DNA from: Bispira polyomma
Taxonomy: Eukaryota
Assembly: GCA_965649765.1 (NCBI GenBank)
Contig: OZ287750.1
Location: 6,324,001 to 6,388,000, forward strand
Length of the DNA: 64,000 nt
Reading direction: 5' to 3'
Shown: piece after piece, positions 6,001-64,000 of the stretch
Layout: each line of letters starts with the position of its first letter
Position numbering within the stretch: the first letter of the stretch is position 1
The notes under the pieces: generated by a model
The model's database searches: none
Told to the model about the DNA's origin: nothing
What the model saw: only the letters and a program-made list of their open reading frames with translations
Translations under genes and position numbers: made by a program

Positions 6001-8725
6001 TTATCTTTACAAGTTTTGTCCCAAGGGTGGAGTGCATTGCTAAAATCTGAGAAATAGTACGCATATTTAGCCAATCATTTGTAAGAAAGACTATTACCAT
6101 AAATCATTCTTTCCATCAGTTATAAGACTTTGGAACTATCTTGACCCTGACATGAGAGGAGTCTTATCACTCCATTTTTTAAAGTCAAAGTTAGAATTAA
6201 ACTATCATATAAAATTTAATAATGAATTTGTGGCACACAGGTAAATCTGCAGTATACCACAGTAGGCTTAGAATGGATCTTAGTGCTTTGAACTTCCACC
6301 ATAGGTCATACAATTTCATAGAACATGACTGGTGCTCTGTGTGTAAAACTGGTCCAGAATCTGTGACCCATTATTTCATAAAATGCCCTGCTTATGCTGC
6401 TCATAGAGATGAAATGCTACAGACCATAAGCAAGTTATCATATATTTTACTGTATGGCACTGATCTTTTTAAAATTGATACAATAGTATTTGACAGTTGG
6501 TTATTTCACACACCCATTGGTTCACTATCAATTCGATTTGAATGTCACACATGTTACATGCCATCCTATCATCTATCTTGTTTACTAAGAAATAACTTTC
6601 TTTTTGTACTATATCTTATTGTTTAAGTGTGTAAAATGCTTTCTTTTTGAACAAGAACCCTAAGTGGCTTGCAGCTGTGGGTAATTGTCATTAAATAAAT
6701 GATGTCTAAATTAAAAACATACATCACATAATGTGTACAGACCGGTTAAAAATAGTCCTTATGTGTGCACTGTGGTTTAAATGTAAGTCTAAATCTGTCA
6801 AAAATAATACTGTTGACATTGTGGTTCTGTTCTCTCTGTGTCTAAATTCTGGTCAGGCTATGGTGGCATGATTTGTATTTTCTACTTACACAATTGTTTC
6901 TTGATTGCTACAGCCTGGTCATGTACATTTAAGTACTAGATCCTTAGTACCTAGATCCCAGGTATCTTTTTCTCATAATCTTTGTCATGTTTTTTACACT
7001 TGTGGCAATAGAAGTGCATTTTAGAGTTTGTTACAAGAAATTGCTGAACATAGTAACTGTTCGATCAAACAATTTTAACGATGGATAAAAGCTAAAGTAT
7101 TCAACCAAGAGGTTAATTGACAATAGACATACTGTGATATCTAAAGAGGCCACAGAAGTGTGTCTAATCTGTAGGAAATTGTGCTAGGCTTACCTCTTGG
7201 TTGTCTGTGAGTTGGCCATCTTAGGAGATTTGGGGACAGCCTAAAAGTAAACATTTATTTTATGCATATAGACTTATACAAGGAGATTATACACATCCAA
7301 ACAAAAACAATTACATTGTATTTAGCAATTAAATGTAAAAGTGGATCGTATTTGTGTACCATTAATATCAGTGAAATAAGCTTGTGGGGAACATTACCTA
7401 TAGTATCCTATACAGCTATTTACAAATATTTGGCACTTGTTGCATTCGTTCACTGTACAAAATAAAATTAGGAATGTTAATATTTCGATTGCCAATGACA
7501 CTGGATAGATTCTATACACGAGAATATTTATTTATATTAACAGAATATGAAAAATGGTTTAATCTCATACACATCCCTGCAAAATGAGTTAGGTGACAGT
7601 ATATGTTTCCTGTGCTCAATCAATTACTTTTTATTCATTTTCATTTTCAGATAATTTTTAAAGCTTAAATAACTTGATTGTCGATGTAAGCCAATTTCAT
7701 ATGTTGTCAATGGCAAGTCAGTGAAAAAAGTCTGGGTTGTAAGTATGGCAAATGGTAAAAAGTGTGGGTCAGAGGTATGGCAAGTCAGTGGCAAAATTTT
7801 GTAACTTTACTATGATGTAGCTGAGGCATTTTGTTTACCGAGTGAAGCACCAATGAAATTGACTGGTAGCAAAGGATTTTACCGCCTTTTCTACTAATGC
7901 CTCATTAATTAATTAAAATCAAGGTGAAAACAAGTAAACATTCTCCCAACCCACTAGCCAAAATTTTAATATTTAACCTCTTGTGTGATTTCTCTATGTT
8001 TGTTTAAGACACATATCACGGTGTCCTGTCCTTGGACCATCCTCTGCTAGTAGGTGCTGCAGGCCTCGAGTTCTATGTATAATATTATGCATTTTTAATG
8101 CACTTTATTGATGCAAGGCATCTTCTAAAGTGCAACAGCTGAATAAGTGATTTAATCGTGTGATCCACAGACATAGGAAGGTTGCAATGTAGGATGTGGA
8201 GGTGTACAAAAGGGAAACTACAGTCAAAAGGCTAGGTTAAAAAGACAGGCTTTAAGCTTTTTCCTAAAACCCATAAGTGTGTCTGATATCTGATGTTGAC
8301 TGGAAGACTGTTCTCTAACAAGGGAGATGCATGGACAAAGCTCTTGATCCAGTCATTTTTGTGGTATGACGGACTACCTTTATCTGTGTCCTATGTTAAA
8401 TCGACCTTAAAAGGTCATACTATCTACATTGGAAGTCTTTTTTCTTTACGTATACATTATTCTACCTAGGAACTAACTTTTAACATTTCTAATATTTACA
8501 TATTTAAATTTTTCTCCAAACTTATTTTACTATTTATTGTACCTGACTTTGACCAACACCCAACCTTTTTAAACTTCAAGCGACTGACCTATTCATAAGC
8601 TGTTACAGGGTAAATACACTACATACCTGGGCATTGATCCTTTCCATCCATGTGTCAATCCCATTGTTATCCAGGGATGTGGCTGTGGCCACAGTAACAA
8701 CAAACAAACACAATGTCCACTTCAT
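2801..8725 (-). CDS. Secreted H-type lectin domain protein, 203 aa, 7 coding exons: complement(join(2801..2934,3404..3547,3850..3930,4390..4446,4940..4989,7194..7240,8627..8725))
   Basis: All exon phases are compatible (612 nt, no internal stop). Protein: MKWTLCLFVVTVATATSLDNNGIDTWMERINAQAVPKSPKMANSQTTKRFPGTMTSKKTSRQEQEYVTVEVFEAALSDIDDDINELTAVDSSLTSSVSTLQSQYNTATVRSCQSGEITNGCGDYCNWKGQDYPNGMNHVITFSPAFHTTPKVITTLKQYDDTDTSFRFELSVPAKSASQITINLNTWSISRIYSAKLYWLACA. Signal peptide, then the ITF...F..TPKV / R...V / TW...IY....WLAC pattern of the H_lectin fold. Confidence 0.85.
3042..3084. repeat. (TA)n microsatellite
   Basis: Uninterrupted TA run in the last lectin intron. Confidence 0.95.
3404..3547 (-). 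CDS. H-type lectin coding exon 6 (GC donor)
   Basis: ATTCAG|...G|GCAAGT, encodes CQSGEITNG...ITFSPAFHTTPKVITTLKQY. Confidence 0.85.
3850..3930 (-). CDS. H-type lectin coding exon 5
   Basis: TTACAG|...T|GTGAGT, phase 1 to 1, LTAVDSSLTSSVSTLQSQYNTATVRS. Confidence 0.8.
4390..4446 (-). CDS. H-type lectin coding exon 4
   Basis: TTTAG|...G|GTATAA, phase 1 to 1, VTVEVFEAALSDIDDDIN. Confidence 0.75.
4940..4989 (-). CDS. H-type lectin coding exon 3
   Basis: CTGTAG|...T|GTGAGT, phase 2 to 1, FPGTMTSKKTSRQEQE. Confidence 0.75.
5034..5230. repeat. 35-bp minisatellite, about 5.5 copies (one further copy at about 6722-6750)
   Basis: Unit GATGTGTACAGACTGGTTAAAGTATGATATCACAT. Confidence 0.85.
5235..6718 (+). 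mobile_element. 5'-truncated, decayed CR1-like LINE in a lectin intron
   Basis: AFD.VWH..LL / DYL.NR.QRVV RT motifs; C-terminal HSRLRMDLSALN...CSVC...ESVTHYFIKCPAY; AATAAA and A-rich end. Confidence 0.8.
7194..7240 (-). CDS. H-type lectin coding exon 2
   Basis: TTTTAG|...AG|GTAAGC, phase 0 to 2, AVPKSPKMANSQTTKR. Confidence 0.75.
8079..8400 (-). mobile_element. L2 LINE 3' end fragment
   Basis: NSLPVNIR...GFRKKLKACLF followed by a 3' UTR ending GCACTTTAGAAGATGCC...AATGCATAATATTAT. Confidence 0.7.
8627..8725 (-). CDS. H-type lectin coding exon 1 (signal peptide)
   Basis: GCCATG context, MKWTLCLFVVTVATATS..., donor CAG|GTATGT; an upstream acceptor at 8741 implies a 5' UTR exon. Confidence 0.85.
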
Positions 8726-9592
8726 GGCGTCTCAGGATTTCTGTGTAAAATGTCAGAGATAACTGTGACAAGTGTTGCCTTAGCAGACTAAATGCCCTGT
8801 TAATATACAGCACAGACTGACCCCACTCGCTTGACATATTGTCAAAGTTCAACCTACTTACAGTGTACATATGGGATGCATAGAGCTACTACTCACATGA
8901 TTTGCCATACTTTTAGTTTGCTTTTTTTAAGCTAAAAAGCTTAGCAAACAAATTTAGTGGGTCATGTGTTTTGTGGAAACGTCACACTGTAAGAAATATA
9001 TCAGAAAAACCCAAGATTTAACATTGTAAACAGGAAAACATCAAAACAAATAAGAGGAATATGGAAAACTTTAATCTATATATCATCAAATATATTTTAA
9101 ATTGTAAATGACAGTTAATGTATATGTTGTAAATTTTGTGGAATATCATACACATCAAGTAGAGTCAAAATGGAAAACAAGGATGGAAATTTGAAGTCCA
9201 AGGTAGCAGAGTTTGTATTTACACCTAGATCTACTTCACCATATGTAAAGCAGAGCTCACATTGTAACAACAATCGTAGTGGCAGAAAGATCTGTGTTAA
9301 AAGAAAAAAAATCTACTTTTTATCACAAGGGAATAAAGTACTGACAATATTTGTATTAGTTGGCATAGTAAGGAAAAACCTGAGATAAAAGTAATTTCAT
9401 ACGTGTGCATCCAATCTCACAACATAAAATTTGGGTTTTACTTTTTATAAATATTTTACAAATTTTAAAGTTTAATCCACAACTGTTAGTGTCTGTAAAG
9501 GTATATTATTCATGTGTTGGATGGGTGACTGTCCATAAATTCTACTAAGAGCTAAATCATTTCCACCTTTGACCTTAGAAGTACTGTTTTAG

Positions 9593-10285
9593 TACCTGGC
9601 TGCCGACGCCAACAAGCTAGAGGAGGGGATTTTCAGACATTTAGGAATGACACATTTTCCAAACATAGTAAGATACAGCATGATAGAAGTTATCACACAG
9701 ATCAAGCCACCTGCAGTTTCAACCTATGTGCCTTAACAGCAAGTGCCTCAACATCAAGTTGGGTATGTGGATACAGTTACACCATTGACCTTCCATACTA
9801 TCCAGCTGCAGGTCTCAAAGGCTGATCTGCAACTGCATCCAAAGATTCCATGCTACATCATAGATGAGACTACAGTGGCAACTAGGCAGGTGAAACTGGT
9901 CAGCCCATCACCCAGCAAGCAGTTTTCAAACCCACCATCGAATGGCACCACAAATGATGATACAGCTCACAATACTTTATCGATTTCCAGTATTTTTAAA
10001 TATTTTAACACAGAGATACCACAGGATATTTGATACGTACAGATCTTGAGCCTTACACTCGGCGATCAGCAACAACAGCTTGTAACGCTCAGCCTACAGA
10101 TAGTCAGCGATCAGCAACAACCACTTGGAATGCATAGCCTACAGACAGTCAACGATTAGCAACAACAGCTTGGAACGCATAGCCTTCAGACAGTCAGCAA
10201 TCAGCAACAACTGCTTGGAACTCGTAGCCCACAACCACCCAACATCACCTCTGCGTCACAGCCTCCTCCACCATCACCACAGTAG
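9593..10285 (+). pseudogene. 3' part of putative Harbinger accessory (Myb/SANT/MADF-type) gene
   Basis: YLAADANKLEE.DFQTFRND helical motif followed by a Q/P/S-rich tail with in-frame 45-bp repeats; frameshifts and stops present. Identity inferred from position opposite the transposase; the DNA-binding domain itself is not seen. Confidence 0.5.
10067..10228 (+). repeat. 45-bp coding tandem repeat (about 3.5 copies, QQQQLGTHSLQTVSD-like)
   Basis: Unit CAGCAACAACAGCTTGGAACGCATAGCCTTCAGACAGTCAGCAAT. Confidence 0.85.
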
Positions 10286-10339
10286 CCAGTCAGCAGTGTC
10301 CTGGCGGTCCTTTTCAGACAGACATTCATTGAAACTTCC

Positions 10340-10355
10340 GGCCCTTTTAAGGGCC
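10340..10355 (+). promoter_or_regulatory. Histone mRNA 3' stem-loop motif (Histone3-like) after the accessory gene
   Basis: GGCCCT-TTTA-AGGGCC followed by ACCC; perfect 6-bp stem and 4-nt loop. Confidence 0.8.
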
Positions 10356-11202
10356 ACCCGAACATTATTTGAGCTTGAATGTTGAAAATCCCAAACAAAC
10401 GATAATACTGTCCCCTCTAAAGCAATTCCCACATGCAAACATAAATTAATAATCACTGGCCCAGAGTTCAAACCCAAAATAATAATCTCAAACAAACAGA
10501 TTACAATGTCCCCTAAAACAATTCACACATACACACAGAAATTATAAATCACTGACCCAGAGTTCAAACCCCAAAGTAAAAATTGAATGACAGTAAATCT
10601 CCCAGTAACAGTGTTTGTCCCTAGAAATAAAAATGGCCCAAATACCTACCAAATTCAAAGAAAAAGCTCCAATATCCTTTGTAAATTGTAACTTTTAAAT
10701 AAGACAAAGAGAAAAGGAATAATTTAGAAAAAAAAGAGAAACTCTTTCTAACCCCATATTTTGACAGCTGTGCAATACAAGTTTTTTTCATGGACCAAAG
10801 AAATCATTTCCTGAAATGTCCTACTCCAAAACAACTAACCACACCAATAACAGGGTTTGAACCCATGTTATCTGACAATTAATGGCCCACAACCTATTGA
10901 TTGCTGGGGAATCTTTAGATTTTATATTGAGGGGGCAACAGTAAAAAAATTTAATGTCAGTGAAAGGCCTTGGCTTTAAATCTATTTAAATAAGGAGTTT
11001 CTTTCTTGAGTGTGTGTGTTGGAGTCTAAAATATTTTATGTTGGGTTGGAATCTACCATGTTTTTTTATGGTGGGGCCTAAAATATTACATGTATGGCCG
11101 TTGGGTTCTAACTTTATGAAGTGTGATTTGTGAGATGTAATTGGGTTAGGGGTTGAGGGGTACAAACAAATAGCTTTGTAATTGTTCTTGGAAATTTTGA
11201 GT

Positions 11203-11218
11203 GGTCCTGAAAAGGACC
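11203..11218 (-). promoter_or_regulatory. Histone mRNA 3' stem-loop motif (Histone3-like) after the transposase
   Basis: AAAA-GGTCCT-TTTC-AGGACC-ACTCA on the minus strand, then CAAGAACAA about 13 nt downstream. Confidence 0.85.
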
Positions 11219-11304
11219 TTTTAGGTTACAGCTACTGCGACATCTCTGGCTCCGAGTGGCTTCTCATCAGGCTTAGGTAGTTAGGCTCAGACTCAAGCCA
11301 AACT

Positions 11305-12180
11305 TTATATTCTGTCATTCTGCCACGGGACTGCCCCTCATTCATAATGTTGTCCATCAACATGTGCCTGTGCCCTTTTGCCTGTCTAGATGGATTTTTA
11401 TTTTCATTAGGCAATGGACCCCCCACCAGCTGCTCCTCAGGCTCAGGTGGGTTCCCACAGCAGCTTCTCAAAATGTTGCATAATATAACACATGGTAACG
11501 CATTGTTTGACGCCACTAGAGGATGTTCTTGCATGGTTGTCAGTAGAGGCCCGAACCTGCTGACCAATATTCCAAAGGCGTTCTAACAACCCTCCTTTCC
11601 CTGGATATTCTGTAGTTGCATATCCTTTAATTGTTAGTGAGTGCTCTTCTGTAAAAGAGTTTCATCAAGCATGGGTTCAGGGCGAGGGCGTCGTTCCCCA
11701 GTAGGAAGTTGTTGACATCATGTCTCGAACTTTCAAATAGTGGTTCAGGTCTGGGCAGCCTGATGGATCCGTCTTCAAACTTTTGTTTTAGTTCTGATTG
11801 GTTAAAAATTTGTGCACCCGAGCACAAACCACTGCAGCCAAGGTCCACCTAAACAAATCTGTGGTCACCATCAACCAGGTCTAACAGCACAATTGAATGG
11901 AACCCTTTGTAGTTGTAAAATTCACTGCCAGCCTTTGAAGATTTCTTGATGGCTACATGCTTTCGTCAATGGAGCCCACAGCGTGAGGGATGCTCCATCT
12001 GTTTCTGATACTTCTTCAAGTTTCATCCAGCCAGCAGGCAAGGGAAGGCAGGACAGATTTTCAGCTTTGTATTCTCCTTGGCCTTGCAGATCCCTTGGAC
12101 AAACTTGGTGATTGTCAATTTCCCCACCCTGAATTGGTACGACAAGGAACTGTAACTCAATCCAGGGCTTGACCAAGTGG
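11305..12180 (-). pseudogene. PIF/Harbinger (HARBI1-like, DDE_Tnp_4) transposase, frameshifted
   Basis: YSSLSYQFRVG, W.IPHAVGSID.KHVAI, FYNYKGFHSIVLL.LVD, FLLGNDA, NYRISR.RRVV.NAFGILVSRF, and ...AVPWQNDRI* ending at TAA 11307-11305. Confidence 0.92.
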
Positions 12181-12364
12181 AGGGGTGACACTCTTGAAGG
12201 CCAGACCTTTTCGGAGGGCAGGGGGGTCTAGCCTCTAAGAATGTCAAGGCGGGTGGGGCAAGGGGCAGGTGGTGGCCTGGAGTTCAATTAATTCCTCTTG
12301 ATATCATGTAACTTCAATTTCAGCCAATCACTGTTCAGAGAAGTAGGCAATGTATGTACAATAA

Positions 12365-12567
12365 NNNNNNNNNNNNNNNNNNNNNNNNNNNNNNNNNNNN
12401 NNNNNNNNNNNNNNNNNNNNNNNNNNNNNNNNNNNNNNNNNNNNNNNNNNNNNNNNNNNNNNNNNNNNNNNNNNNNNNNNNNNNNNNNNNNNNNNNNNNN
12501 NNNNNNNNNNNNNNNNNNNNNNNNNNNNNNNNNNNNNNNNNNNNNNNNNNNNNNNNNNNNNNNNNNN
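12365..12567. other. Assembly gap (203 N)
   Basis: Run of N. Confidence 1.
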
Positions 12568-12597
12568 TGTTACATTTCTGGGCATATTCAATACCCA

Positions 12598-13530
12598 CTA
12601 CTCCCTTTTGTTACTGTCTCTCACATTAAACAGCTCTACGGACTCAGCCGATAATGTGTCCACATTAACATTCGTTGGAAATCTCGTCCTTGGTATTGGT
12701 AATCCTGAACTCTTTTTAAAGCATATTCAGATATTACACCGACACTGTGTACATTGAGTACGTCTACCGCAACAAAAGTAAATATTAAAAGCAAAAGCGA
12801 TCACAACCACCCTAAGGCTTATAGAGAAACATATCACCAGTTCAATTTCAAAATCATTTGTCATCCTTTCATTATCCGTCACGATTACATTTTCAGTAGT
12901 CGGAATATCAGTAACCACACTTTCAGTAGTCAGATTATCAGTAGTCACACTTTCAGCAGATTCAGGGCCGTTGGGGTCACTTCTTTTGGCTTGGGAAAGG
13001 GTTTCCTAGTTTTAAATTTACGTCTGGGGATGGTTCTCCTGGTGATAGTCTCTGAGGTCGTTACCTCAGGGACTGTAGTCATTTCCTCTACTGTGGTCAT
13101 TTCCTCCAGTGTGGTGGTCGTCTGAAGGGTGGTGGTCTTCTGGGTAGTACTTTTAATATGGTTTTTCTTAACAGTAAATACTCTGGTCAAAGGTCTGCTA
13201 CAGTCTGTAATTATTTTGACTGCCGTTACCTCCAAGCTTTCACAATCAATTTTTTTTTTGTTTCTGTACATCAAGGGTCTTTAAATACATAAACTTTGAT
13301 AGAGATTTGTAATCGTTAGTCTTCAAACAGTTTCCTTTTAGGTCCAGGTATCGCACTTTTTTAATATCCAATTTTGATATTAGTAAATCTGCTAAACTTT
13401 TGATACACAAGTTCTGACAGATTACAAAATACCTGTCATTAGAACACTGACACCTCACACCACTAAAACTACAGGCCTCTGAATCCGTTTTACCTATCAG
13501 ACACAGTACACACAATATAAACAGTAACAT
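12598..13530 (-). pseudogene. Intronless LRR / Thr-rich stalk / transmembrane protein (about 310 aa), disrupted
   Basis: Three adjacent ORFs join into signal peptide, LRRNT (CSFSGVRCQC...VICQ), LRRs (VRYLDLKGNCL; LKTLDV), mucin stalk, TM, Cys-rich juxtamembrane segment and tail. Lesions: frameshift in the A-run at 13250-13259, frameshift near 12967, TGA at 12729-12727. Confidence 0.75.
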
Positions 13531-13567
13531 CTTGAAATCTAATAAAAATTACTTTGGGAGTCATCAT

Positions 13568-13575
13568 TATATATA
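13568..13575 (-). promoter_or_regulatory. TATA box candidate of the LRR gene
   Basis: GGCTATATATAAT about 40 nt upstream of the ATG at 13530. Confidence 0.4.
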
Positions 13576-14775
13576 GCCTGGACACTGAGGCCTCCAACTG
13601 TGATCCTTATTATTTATTTCTGGACTTACCCCTCACTGTATTTATATTGGTCATTAGTGTCTCCAGTAGAGTTGATTATATCTCATAGAGCTCACAGATA
13701 GGCCCTGCACTTCCATCCAATGAATAGATCAAATATTTAGATTGGACTGTTTACATTTCAAATAACAGCTCAGATCAAAATACTACCCTTTTGTACTCAG
13801 AAGAATGAATGTCTGAGATTCTGGACCCCCGACTGAGCCTAGATATTATTATCTCAGGAAGGGTGAAAAACCCCTCTGCCTGACATCACCACTCTGGTTA
13901 ATATTATCTTAAAGGATTAAATGTGGTTTCACTGCAATTGTTTAAGATTTAAGTAAAAAAGTGTACGTGGGAGCCAAGACTGCAGGGGAAAAACACCTTT
14001 TGTGTGTGTGTTTGTGTGGGCTTGTGTGTGTGAAGAGTTTCTGTGAAAATATGCTGGCCATTTCACATGTCTGTGCGTATGTGTGTATGTTATATGTGCG
14101 TGTATGTGTGTGTGAAAATGTAAATGCAGTGTTAAATAAAAGGTTTTTTCCCCTCAAGTTCACATCCTATACCTCAAGACAGATTTTATTATCCTGTCAA
14201 ATAAAATTTTTGGACTATAAATACCAATAGTGGTCAACATATTCTATTAGCACTATCAATACTAATATGTGTGTGTAAATGTAGGGGCTTTTGTGAATGT
14301 ATAGAGTTGGACTATAAAATACCAATAATGGGCAACAGATTTTCTTTTTTAGTTTAAATATGAGCATTTGCATGTGTGTATGGGTGTCTGTGTGTTTGTC
14401 ATTCTGTATGTGTATACATTGCTACAAGTCAGAGTCTTCTAAATTTGTGTTATGTTGTAAGCTAGAATATTCACCATATTATTATTATTATCAAAACAGG
14501 ACCACGAGGGTGATTAAATAGGGTTTTTAAATTTTGAAAATTGGATTAATATTAAGGAAGATAGACATTTTTGAATAATTATGTTTCTTTTAACAATTTA
14601 CAATGTAGACTAGTATCGCGACGAGCGGCCGCAAACGCTGATTAATTAGCTTTTTAAACTTTGAAAATTGGAGTAATATTAAGGAAGTTATGGCTATTGA
14701 AAGTTTTTTCAATATTCAGTCACAGATATTATTGAACCCATTTTTTTACCACTAAAATCACTAGGGGCTAATTCG

Positions 14776-43322: not shown

Positions 43323-64000
<20,678 letters not shown>

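Follow-up and report, generated by a model that had tools for sequence, protein, structure and literature searches.

Histone-type 3′ end signals on both genes of a Harbinger transposon lineage from Bispira polyomma

Introduction

Among cellular mRNAs, those of the replication-dependent histones are regarded as the sole class with a 3′-terminal stem-loop in place of a poly(A) tail. In flies and mammals, efficient 3′ processing of these mRNAs is aided by histone promoters and the histone locus body. Histone pre-mRNAs carry a two-part processing signal made of a hairpin and a downstream element (PMC2781718), and in animals the genes for replication-dependent histones have no introns (PMC13525598). 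Here we describe a decayed copy of a Harbinger transposon located in a 64,000-nt stretch of Bispira polyomma DNA, called the window below (assembly GCA_965649765.1, contig OZ287750.1, positions 6,324,001 to 6,388,000 of the forward strand). The two genes of this copy, for a transposase and for a Myb/SANT-MADF-type partner protein, face each other and are each followed by a histone-type stem-loop. To judge from sequence, both genes of this Harbinger lineage carry a complete histone 3′ end signal, conserved over deep divergence.

Results

Two histone-type stem-loops in the window

The initial annotation had placed one hairpin behind each of two convergent genes, on the sense strand of its own gene, and both positions and strands held. 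Stem-loop 1 (10340..10355, + strand) has the structure GGCCCT/TTTA/AGGGCC followed by ACCC and begins 54 nt past the stop codon of the partner gene. Stem-loop 2 (11218-11203, − strand), GGTCCT/TTTC/AGGACC, begins 86 nt past the stop codon of the transposase gene. With the Rfam model Histone3 (RF00032), whose gathering score is 34, stem-loop 2 scored above that limit at 36.1 bits over 11223-11178, and stem-loop 1 scored 29.9 bits (E 1e-5) over 10335-10380. Both were predicted to fold as hairpins. The histone pattern had just these two matches in the window and none in 100 shuffles; a chance match was ruled out by the Rfam scores, the shuffles and a reversed-pattern control. A public 302-nt contig, which may come from the same individual, matched 11027-11328 without a difference, so that an assembly artefact was ruled out for stem-loop 2.

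The downstream element of stem-loop 2 (11172..11202, − strand) contains ACTCA, CAAGAAC at +13 (11190-11184) and AGCT at +28, like the host histone genes; the flank next to the stem is ACTCA in the window and ACCCA in the family. The downstream element of stem-loop 1 (10356..10380, + strand) is damaged. An 11-nt deletion after 10362 removes the CAAGAA core, which the sister copies keep, and the AGCT box has moved from +28 to +17. As the initial annotation had stated, no histone coding sequence lies near: none was found among the open reading frames (ORFs) or six-frame translations of 8000-14000. A histone pseudogene remnant was rejected on this ground, and because the stems are unlike those of the host and the position is repeated in many families.

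Comparison with the host histone genes

Host histone signals were read from the same genome for H3, H2A, H2B and H4 (L038) and for an H1 array (L040). The host genes have one common stem; YAARAAM follows it at +13, and a second box, AGCT or AGTT, lies at +27 to +29. Both boxes recur at equal distances in the transposon signals, as CAARAAC at +12/+13 and AGCT at +27-29. When transposon signals were compared with host signals without gaps, identity was 0.85 in the stem-loop, 0.83 at +1-5, 0.63 at +6-20 and 0.43 at +21-35, and fell to 0.23-0.25 more than 5 nt upstream and to 0.35 beyond +35. Since identity is confined to the stem-loop and the downstream boxes, the block corresponds to the entire two-part histone processing signal and not to the hairpin alone. 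The distance from stop codon to stem is 31-86 nt in the transposon genes versus 27-34 nt in the host histone genes. A host SLBP gene is present (PF15247 above cut-off, two exons on C5).

At the H1 locus (G000:C4:54707086-54812449), over 60 histone H1 genes stand in tandem with no genes of other histones among them, and the repeat unit is 1,727 bp. Core histone genes are found apart from these, in arrays of about 4.8 kb that are spread over several chromosomes. The named proteins most similar to the host histone H1 were those of molluscs.

Distribution of the signal

In the 1.04-Gb genome, the histone pattern occurred 3,077 times. About 1,665 host-type stems carry the +13 box and, among the matches listed, lie in histone arrays. 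GGYCCT-type stems with CAARAAC at +13 gave 736 exact genome matches (reversed control, 0); those listed are dispersed, and 11 facing pairs 0.8-1.3 kb apart were found in the first 100 of the 736. Fourteen of the top Rfam loci were fetched. Three were histone-type, and all 11 others were dispersed and adjoined homology to the Harbinger transposase or its partner, representing at least seven diverged families.

The signal was also detected outside this genome, in ENA and Logan samples. ERZ22147071 contains an intact 436-aa transposase gene and a 406-aa MADF gene, both bearing it. It was likewise found in ERZ25073805 (both genes), ERZ27264376, OFHQ01022529.1 and SRR2134639; the loci of all five samples had been fetched by protein similarity. 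The five outside transposases share 39-67% identity with one another, and the ERZ and OFHQ loci scored 29.7-37.9 bits with Rfam; at the locus L073 the model had no match at an E of 0.01. No histone stem-loop was found in the fetched loci of relatives from Mercenaria, Pinctada, Patella, Lytechinus, Portunus and one Logan sample, and no relative was found among viral contigs.

For a phylogenetic tree of transposases, broken copies were put together from BLAST fragments, and X was written for stops. In this tree a branch of 100% support divides the main signal-bearing group from the signal-less relatives. OFHQ01022529.1 lies outside the main group, on the signal-less side, and a single origin was not rejected (p-AU 0.14). 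L062 and L073 form a second signal-bearing lineage among signal-less relatives.

Covariation and decay

In an alignment of 26 signals, 98.7% of the stem cells pair and three of the six base pairs change on both sides; none of 500 shuffles reached as high. These signals are related sequences and some were chosen by Rfam score, so the covariation figure counts as support and not as a probability. The second G-C pair, the top two pairs and loop residues U1 and U3 are invariant, and loop positions 2 and 4 vary. The invariant positions are those read by SLBP. Across the diverged families the surrounding untranslated regions (UTRs) are unrelated, at background identity.

Conservation and covariation, for which the initial annotation had proposed a test, were supported across families and samples. 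Within the dead copies of the window's family, selected by BLAST with the whole element, the stem-loops are no better conserved than the adjacent UTR: divergence from the column majority was 16% and 9% in the two stem-loops, 15% and 7% in the adjacent UTRs, and 10% in the transposase. The initial annotation had also taken the perfect stems beside decayed ORFs as a sign of selection, and this did not hold. The stems of dead copies decay like their flanks, and at the roughly 10% divergence of the window copy a 16-mer stem-loop would stay intact by luck with a chance of about 0.19 per stem. Dead copies decay evenly, and the signal was maintained in active lineages.

Introns, polyadenylation signals and promoters

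The partner genes of Mercenaria, Lytechinus, Portunus and Pinctada, whose spliced sequences were read frame by frame and unjoined, have an intron just past the MADF region. Six signal-bearing partner genes (L057, L002, L039, L035, L003 and L026) read through this site, and the two ORFs of L057 (436 and 406 aa) are uninterrupted. Intronless partner genes would fit a switch of processing pathway, in a sample that is small and non-independent. No AATAAA or ATTAAA hexamer is present within 300 nt of the intact L057 transposase gene. Among the signal-less named relatives, three of five have AATAAA no more than 150 nt from the transposase end. A histone-like promoter was considered as a distinguishing mark and rejected, as a TATA box 50-65 nt upstream is common to the five intact transposase genes that bear the signal and to three that do not.

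Anatomy of the window element and its surroundings

The window element belongs to the PIF/Harbinger superfamily. It is a decayed and truncated copy of an autonomous-type family and spans 9584..12295; blastn to sister copies covers 9584-12226, and similarity by eye extends to about 12295, so the right limit is approximate. The left end and the MADF domain are missing, and the right end is gone before or in an N gap at 12365-12567. The transposase pseudogene (11305..12214, − strand; stop TAA 11307-11305) is of the DDE_Tnp_4 family and is broken by stops and frameshifts. It matches residues 120-435 of the intact P0002 by tblastn (E 2e-61), in agreement with the Harbinger identity first proposed, and the transposase of the sister copy L024 has PF13359 (E 8.6e-27). 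The broken 3′ part of the partner gene (9584..10285, + strand) matches the partner ORF of L002, a member of the same family (tblastn E 9e-22), and its stop codon TAG (10283-10285) is common to family copies. The L002 partner in turn matches the PF10545-bearing protein of the intact relative L057 (E 7.5e-11), and the L039 partner scores 23.2 bits for PF10545 (cut-off 22). The gene that had been annotated as a putative accessory gene is thereby identified as a Myb/SANT-MADF-type partner. With neither ORF intact the window copy is non-autonomous by decay, and intact relatives such as L057 exist elsewhere. It is one of many copies in the genome at about 70-88% identity. A second, closer family copy (87-88%), L021 (G000:C3:6318578-6320120), lies about 4 kb before the window start and about 15 kb from the window copy; it retains the full downstream element after stem-loop 1.

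The right terminus of the family is sharp and common in about 10 copies, with mostly TTA or TAA next to it. A relative resembling a miniature inverted-repeat transposable element (MITE), 650 bp long and non-autonomous, is located at 55053..55702 of the window. It shares the termini of the family and lacks a stem-loop; its terminal inverted repeats are imperfect, and its target duplication is TAA/TAA. The 3-bp TWA target duplication was seen on both sides of this MITE and not on both sides of any one autonomous copy; the left termini of autonomous copies lie mostly beyond the fetched loci, and the window copy has no termini.

A degenerate second hairpin lies 5′ of stem-loop 1 (10303..10321, + strand), where sister copies have a 7-bp G+C-rich hairpin with a T-rich loop. 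Additional hairpins 5′ of the main stem-loop occur elsewhere, as a tandem pair in L057 (5329-5369) and a group of three in L061 (1950-2016), and some of them carry a compensatory A-U bottom pair. Four 45-nt tandem units (10055-10234), each glutamine-rich and 15 codons long, lie in the 3′ part of the partner gene. Just right of the N gap, at 12945-13530 on the − strand, ORFs encode a signal peptide, a cysteine-rich LRR-like start and a threonine-rich stretch.

Discussion

The presence of the whole two-part signal, at host spacing, behind both genes suggests that the two non-histone transposon mRNAs probably undergo SLBP/U7-type processing. SLBP would bind the hairpin of each transposon pre-mRNA, the U7 small nuclear ribonucleoprotein would pair with the downstream element, and a cut about 5 nt past the stem would yield transposon mRNAs without poly(A). 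A weaker part of the proposal is that the transposase and its Myb-like partner would be expressed together when histone mRNA is made or stored, that is, in S phase, the oocyte or the cleavage embryo. A cut-and-paste element increases in copy number at replication and would profit from coupling to S phase, and storage with maternal histone mRNA would give activity in the germline and early embryo. Early 3′ ends 850 nt apart would also stop the facing transcripts from overlapping and so avoid double-stranded RNA. These three possible advantages are not mutually exclusive. Since the MITE has no signal, the signal is not needed in cis. On balance we lean, by a little, towards a transposon that gave up splicing and polyadenylation of its two genes for histone-type processing, perhaps on more than one occasion, and so tied its activity to replication or maternal storage.

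Several observations weigh against histone-type processing of these genes. U7 snRNA was not found in the genome: the best Rfam hit lay in a common repeat and scored 31.3 against a cut-off of 34, and a U7 pattern search built from the downstream element gave matches at chance level, so that pairing of U7 with the downstream element is putative. The transposon copies are dispersed and may lack the support of histone promoters and the histone locus body. The contigs of three public runs of unspecified kind cover the unique flanks evenly, in a DNA-like manner, and gave no transcript evidence. Ongoing selection on the window copy is ruled out, the stems in dead copies of its family having diverged as much as the flanks, and conservation is inflated at the top Rfam loci because they were picked by motif; the protein-homology loci were picked without it. 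Inside the main signal-bearing group, the P0110/L069 lineage has a transposase gene with AATAAA signals and without the stem-loop, and a reversion to polyadenylation is possible there. In the same lineage (L069:11176-12210), the partner gene retains the downstream element and its hairpin has a non-histone loop, AATA. AATAAA or ATTAAA is found 200-290 nt past the transposase stop in L059, L061 and L062, where poly(A) ends are therefore possible.

These hexamers also favour a different account, in which the hairpin binds SLBP for export, translation, storage or decay and the transcripts are mainly polyadenylated downstream, or both ends are used. Some true histone genes do yield polyadenylated RNAs that run through the stem-loop (PMC5100578). 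However, nearly all families retain the downstream element at its exact distance, and in histone pre-mRNAs this element is removed during processing and hence serves cleavage only (PMC2781718). Conservation of an element with that single use speaks against mainly polyadenylated transcripts, as does the lack of a nearby hexamer behind the intact L057 transposase, and we regard this account as unlikely. A role at the DNA level, with the signals as an internal inverted repeat bound by the Myb-like protein or the transposase and their likeness to histone ends a matter of origin only, might be read from the L057 regions, which form a 44-bp inverted repeat with 89% identity, and from the unusual loop TATC shared by both L059 signals (5350 and 6218). 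The shared loop suggests homogenisation within the element or a host-specific SLBP preference. Such a role is very improbable: the signals are always on the sense strand and 3′ of the stop codon, the compensatory changes preserve hairpin pairing and not primary sequence, a non-autonomous relative has transposed without them, and L057 has subterminal repeats elsewhere that are suited to protein binding.

That the signals are functionless relics, histone 3′ ends captured once or refreshed by conversion from histone arrays, draws on the abundance of donors (the roughly 1,665 histone-type signals of the genome), on the L037 family, whose stem equals the host stem exactly, and on the lack of selection in dead copies. 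It is hard to credit all the same, as the changes that set most transposon stems apart from the host stem are paired, the block is present after both genes, and its 50 nt persist at 40-65% protein identity while the other UTR is at background. Least probable of all, in our estimation, is a hairpin terminator or stabiliser that is independent of SLBP and U7 and merely convergent with the histone signal. The variant loops TATC, TCTA and TGTC and the A-U bottom pair in other samples could be cited for it, but the variable and invariant positions match the histone model, as do the Rfam scores of the ERZ and OFHQ loci, and the downstream element agrees with all five histone classes of the host.

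A literature search, with most subscription journals and Repbase reports outside it, found no report of a Harbinger or any other transposon with a histone signal. The histone-ended Harbinger variant is apparently undescribed so far, and novelty is likely. If the proposed processing by SLBP and U7 is true, a transposon would break the rule that only histone mRNAs end in this way. These elements would then be natural substrates for asking if histone-type processing can act on scattered genes that have neither histone promoters nor a locus body, and by what means cut-and-paste elements match the timing of their activity to replication or to the germline. Poly(A) RNA-seq would miss them, and Rfam Histone3 counts in such genomes would include hundreds of transposon copies.

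As in PIF/Harbinger elements, there are two facing genes, a PF13359 transposase, a PF10545 partner and a 3-bp TWA target duplication. The nearest named proteins are PIF/Harbinger proteins of Mercenaria, Pinctada, Mytilus, Patella, Lytechinus and Portunus, with transposase identity of 49-53%. In contrast, the five named Harbinger relatives that were fetched have no histone stem-loop, and in all four whose partner gene could be seen, that gene contains introns. The 3′ ends resemble those of replication-dependent histone mRNAs in the 6-bp stem, the 4-nt U-rich loop, the ACCCA-like flank, the short UTR and a downstream element at a position identical to that of the host, and the genes are likewise intronless. 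Unlike histone genes, they encode a transposase and a MADF-type protein and are mobile and dispersed outside the histone clusters. Their stems are mostly GGCCCT or GGTCCT, versus GGCTCT in the host histone genes. The likeness to histone genes is claimed for the 3′ end alone, and the window element is neither a histone gene nor a histone pseudogene.

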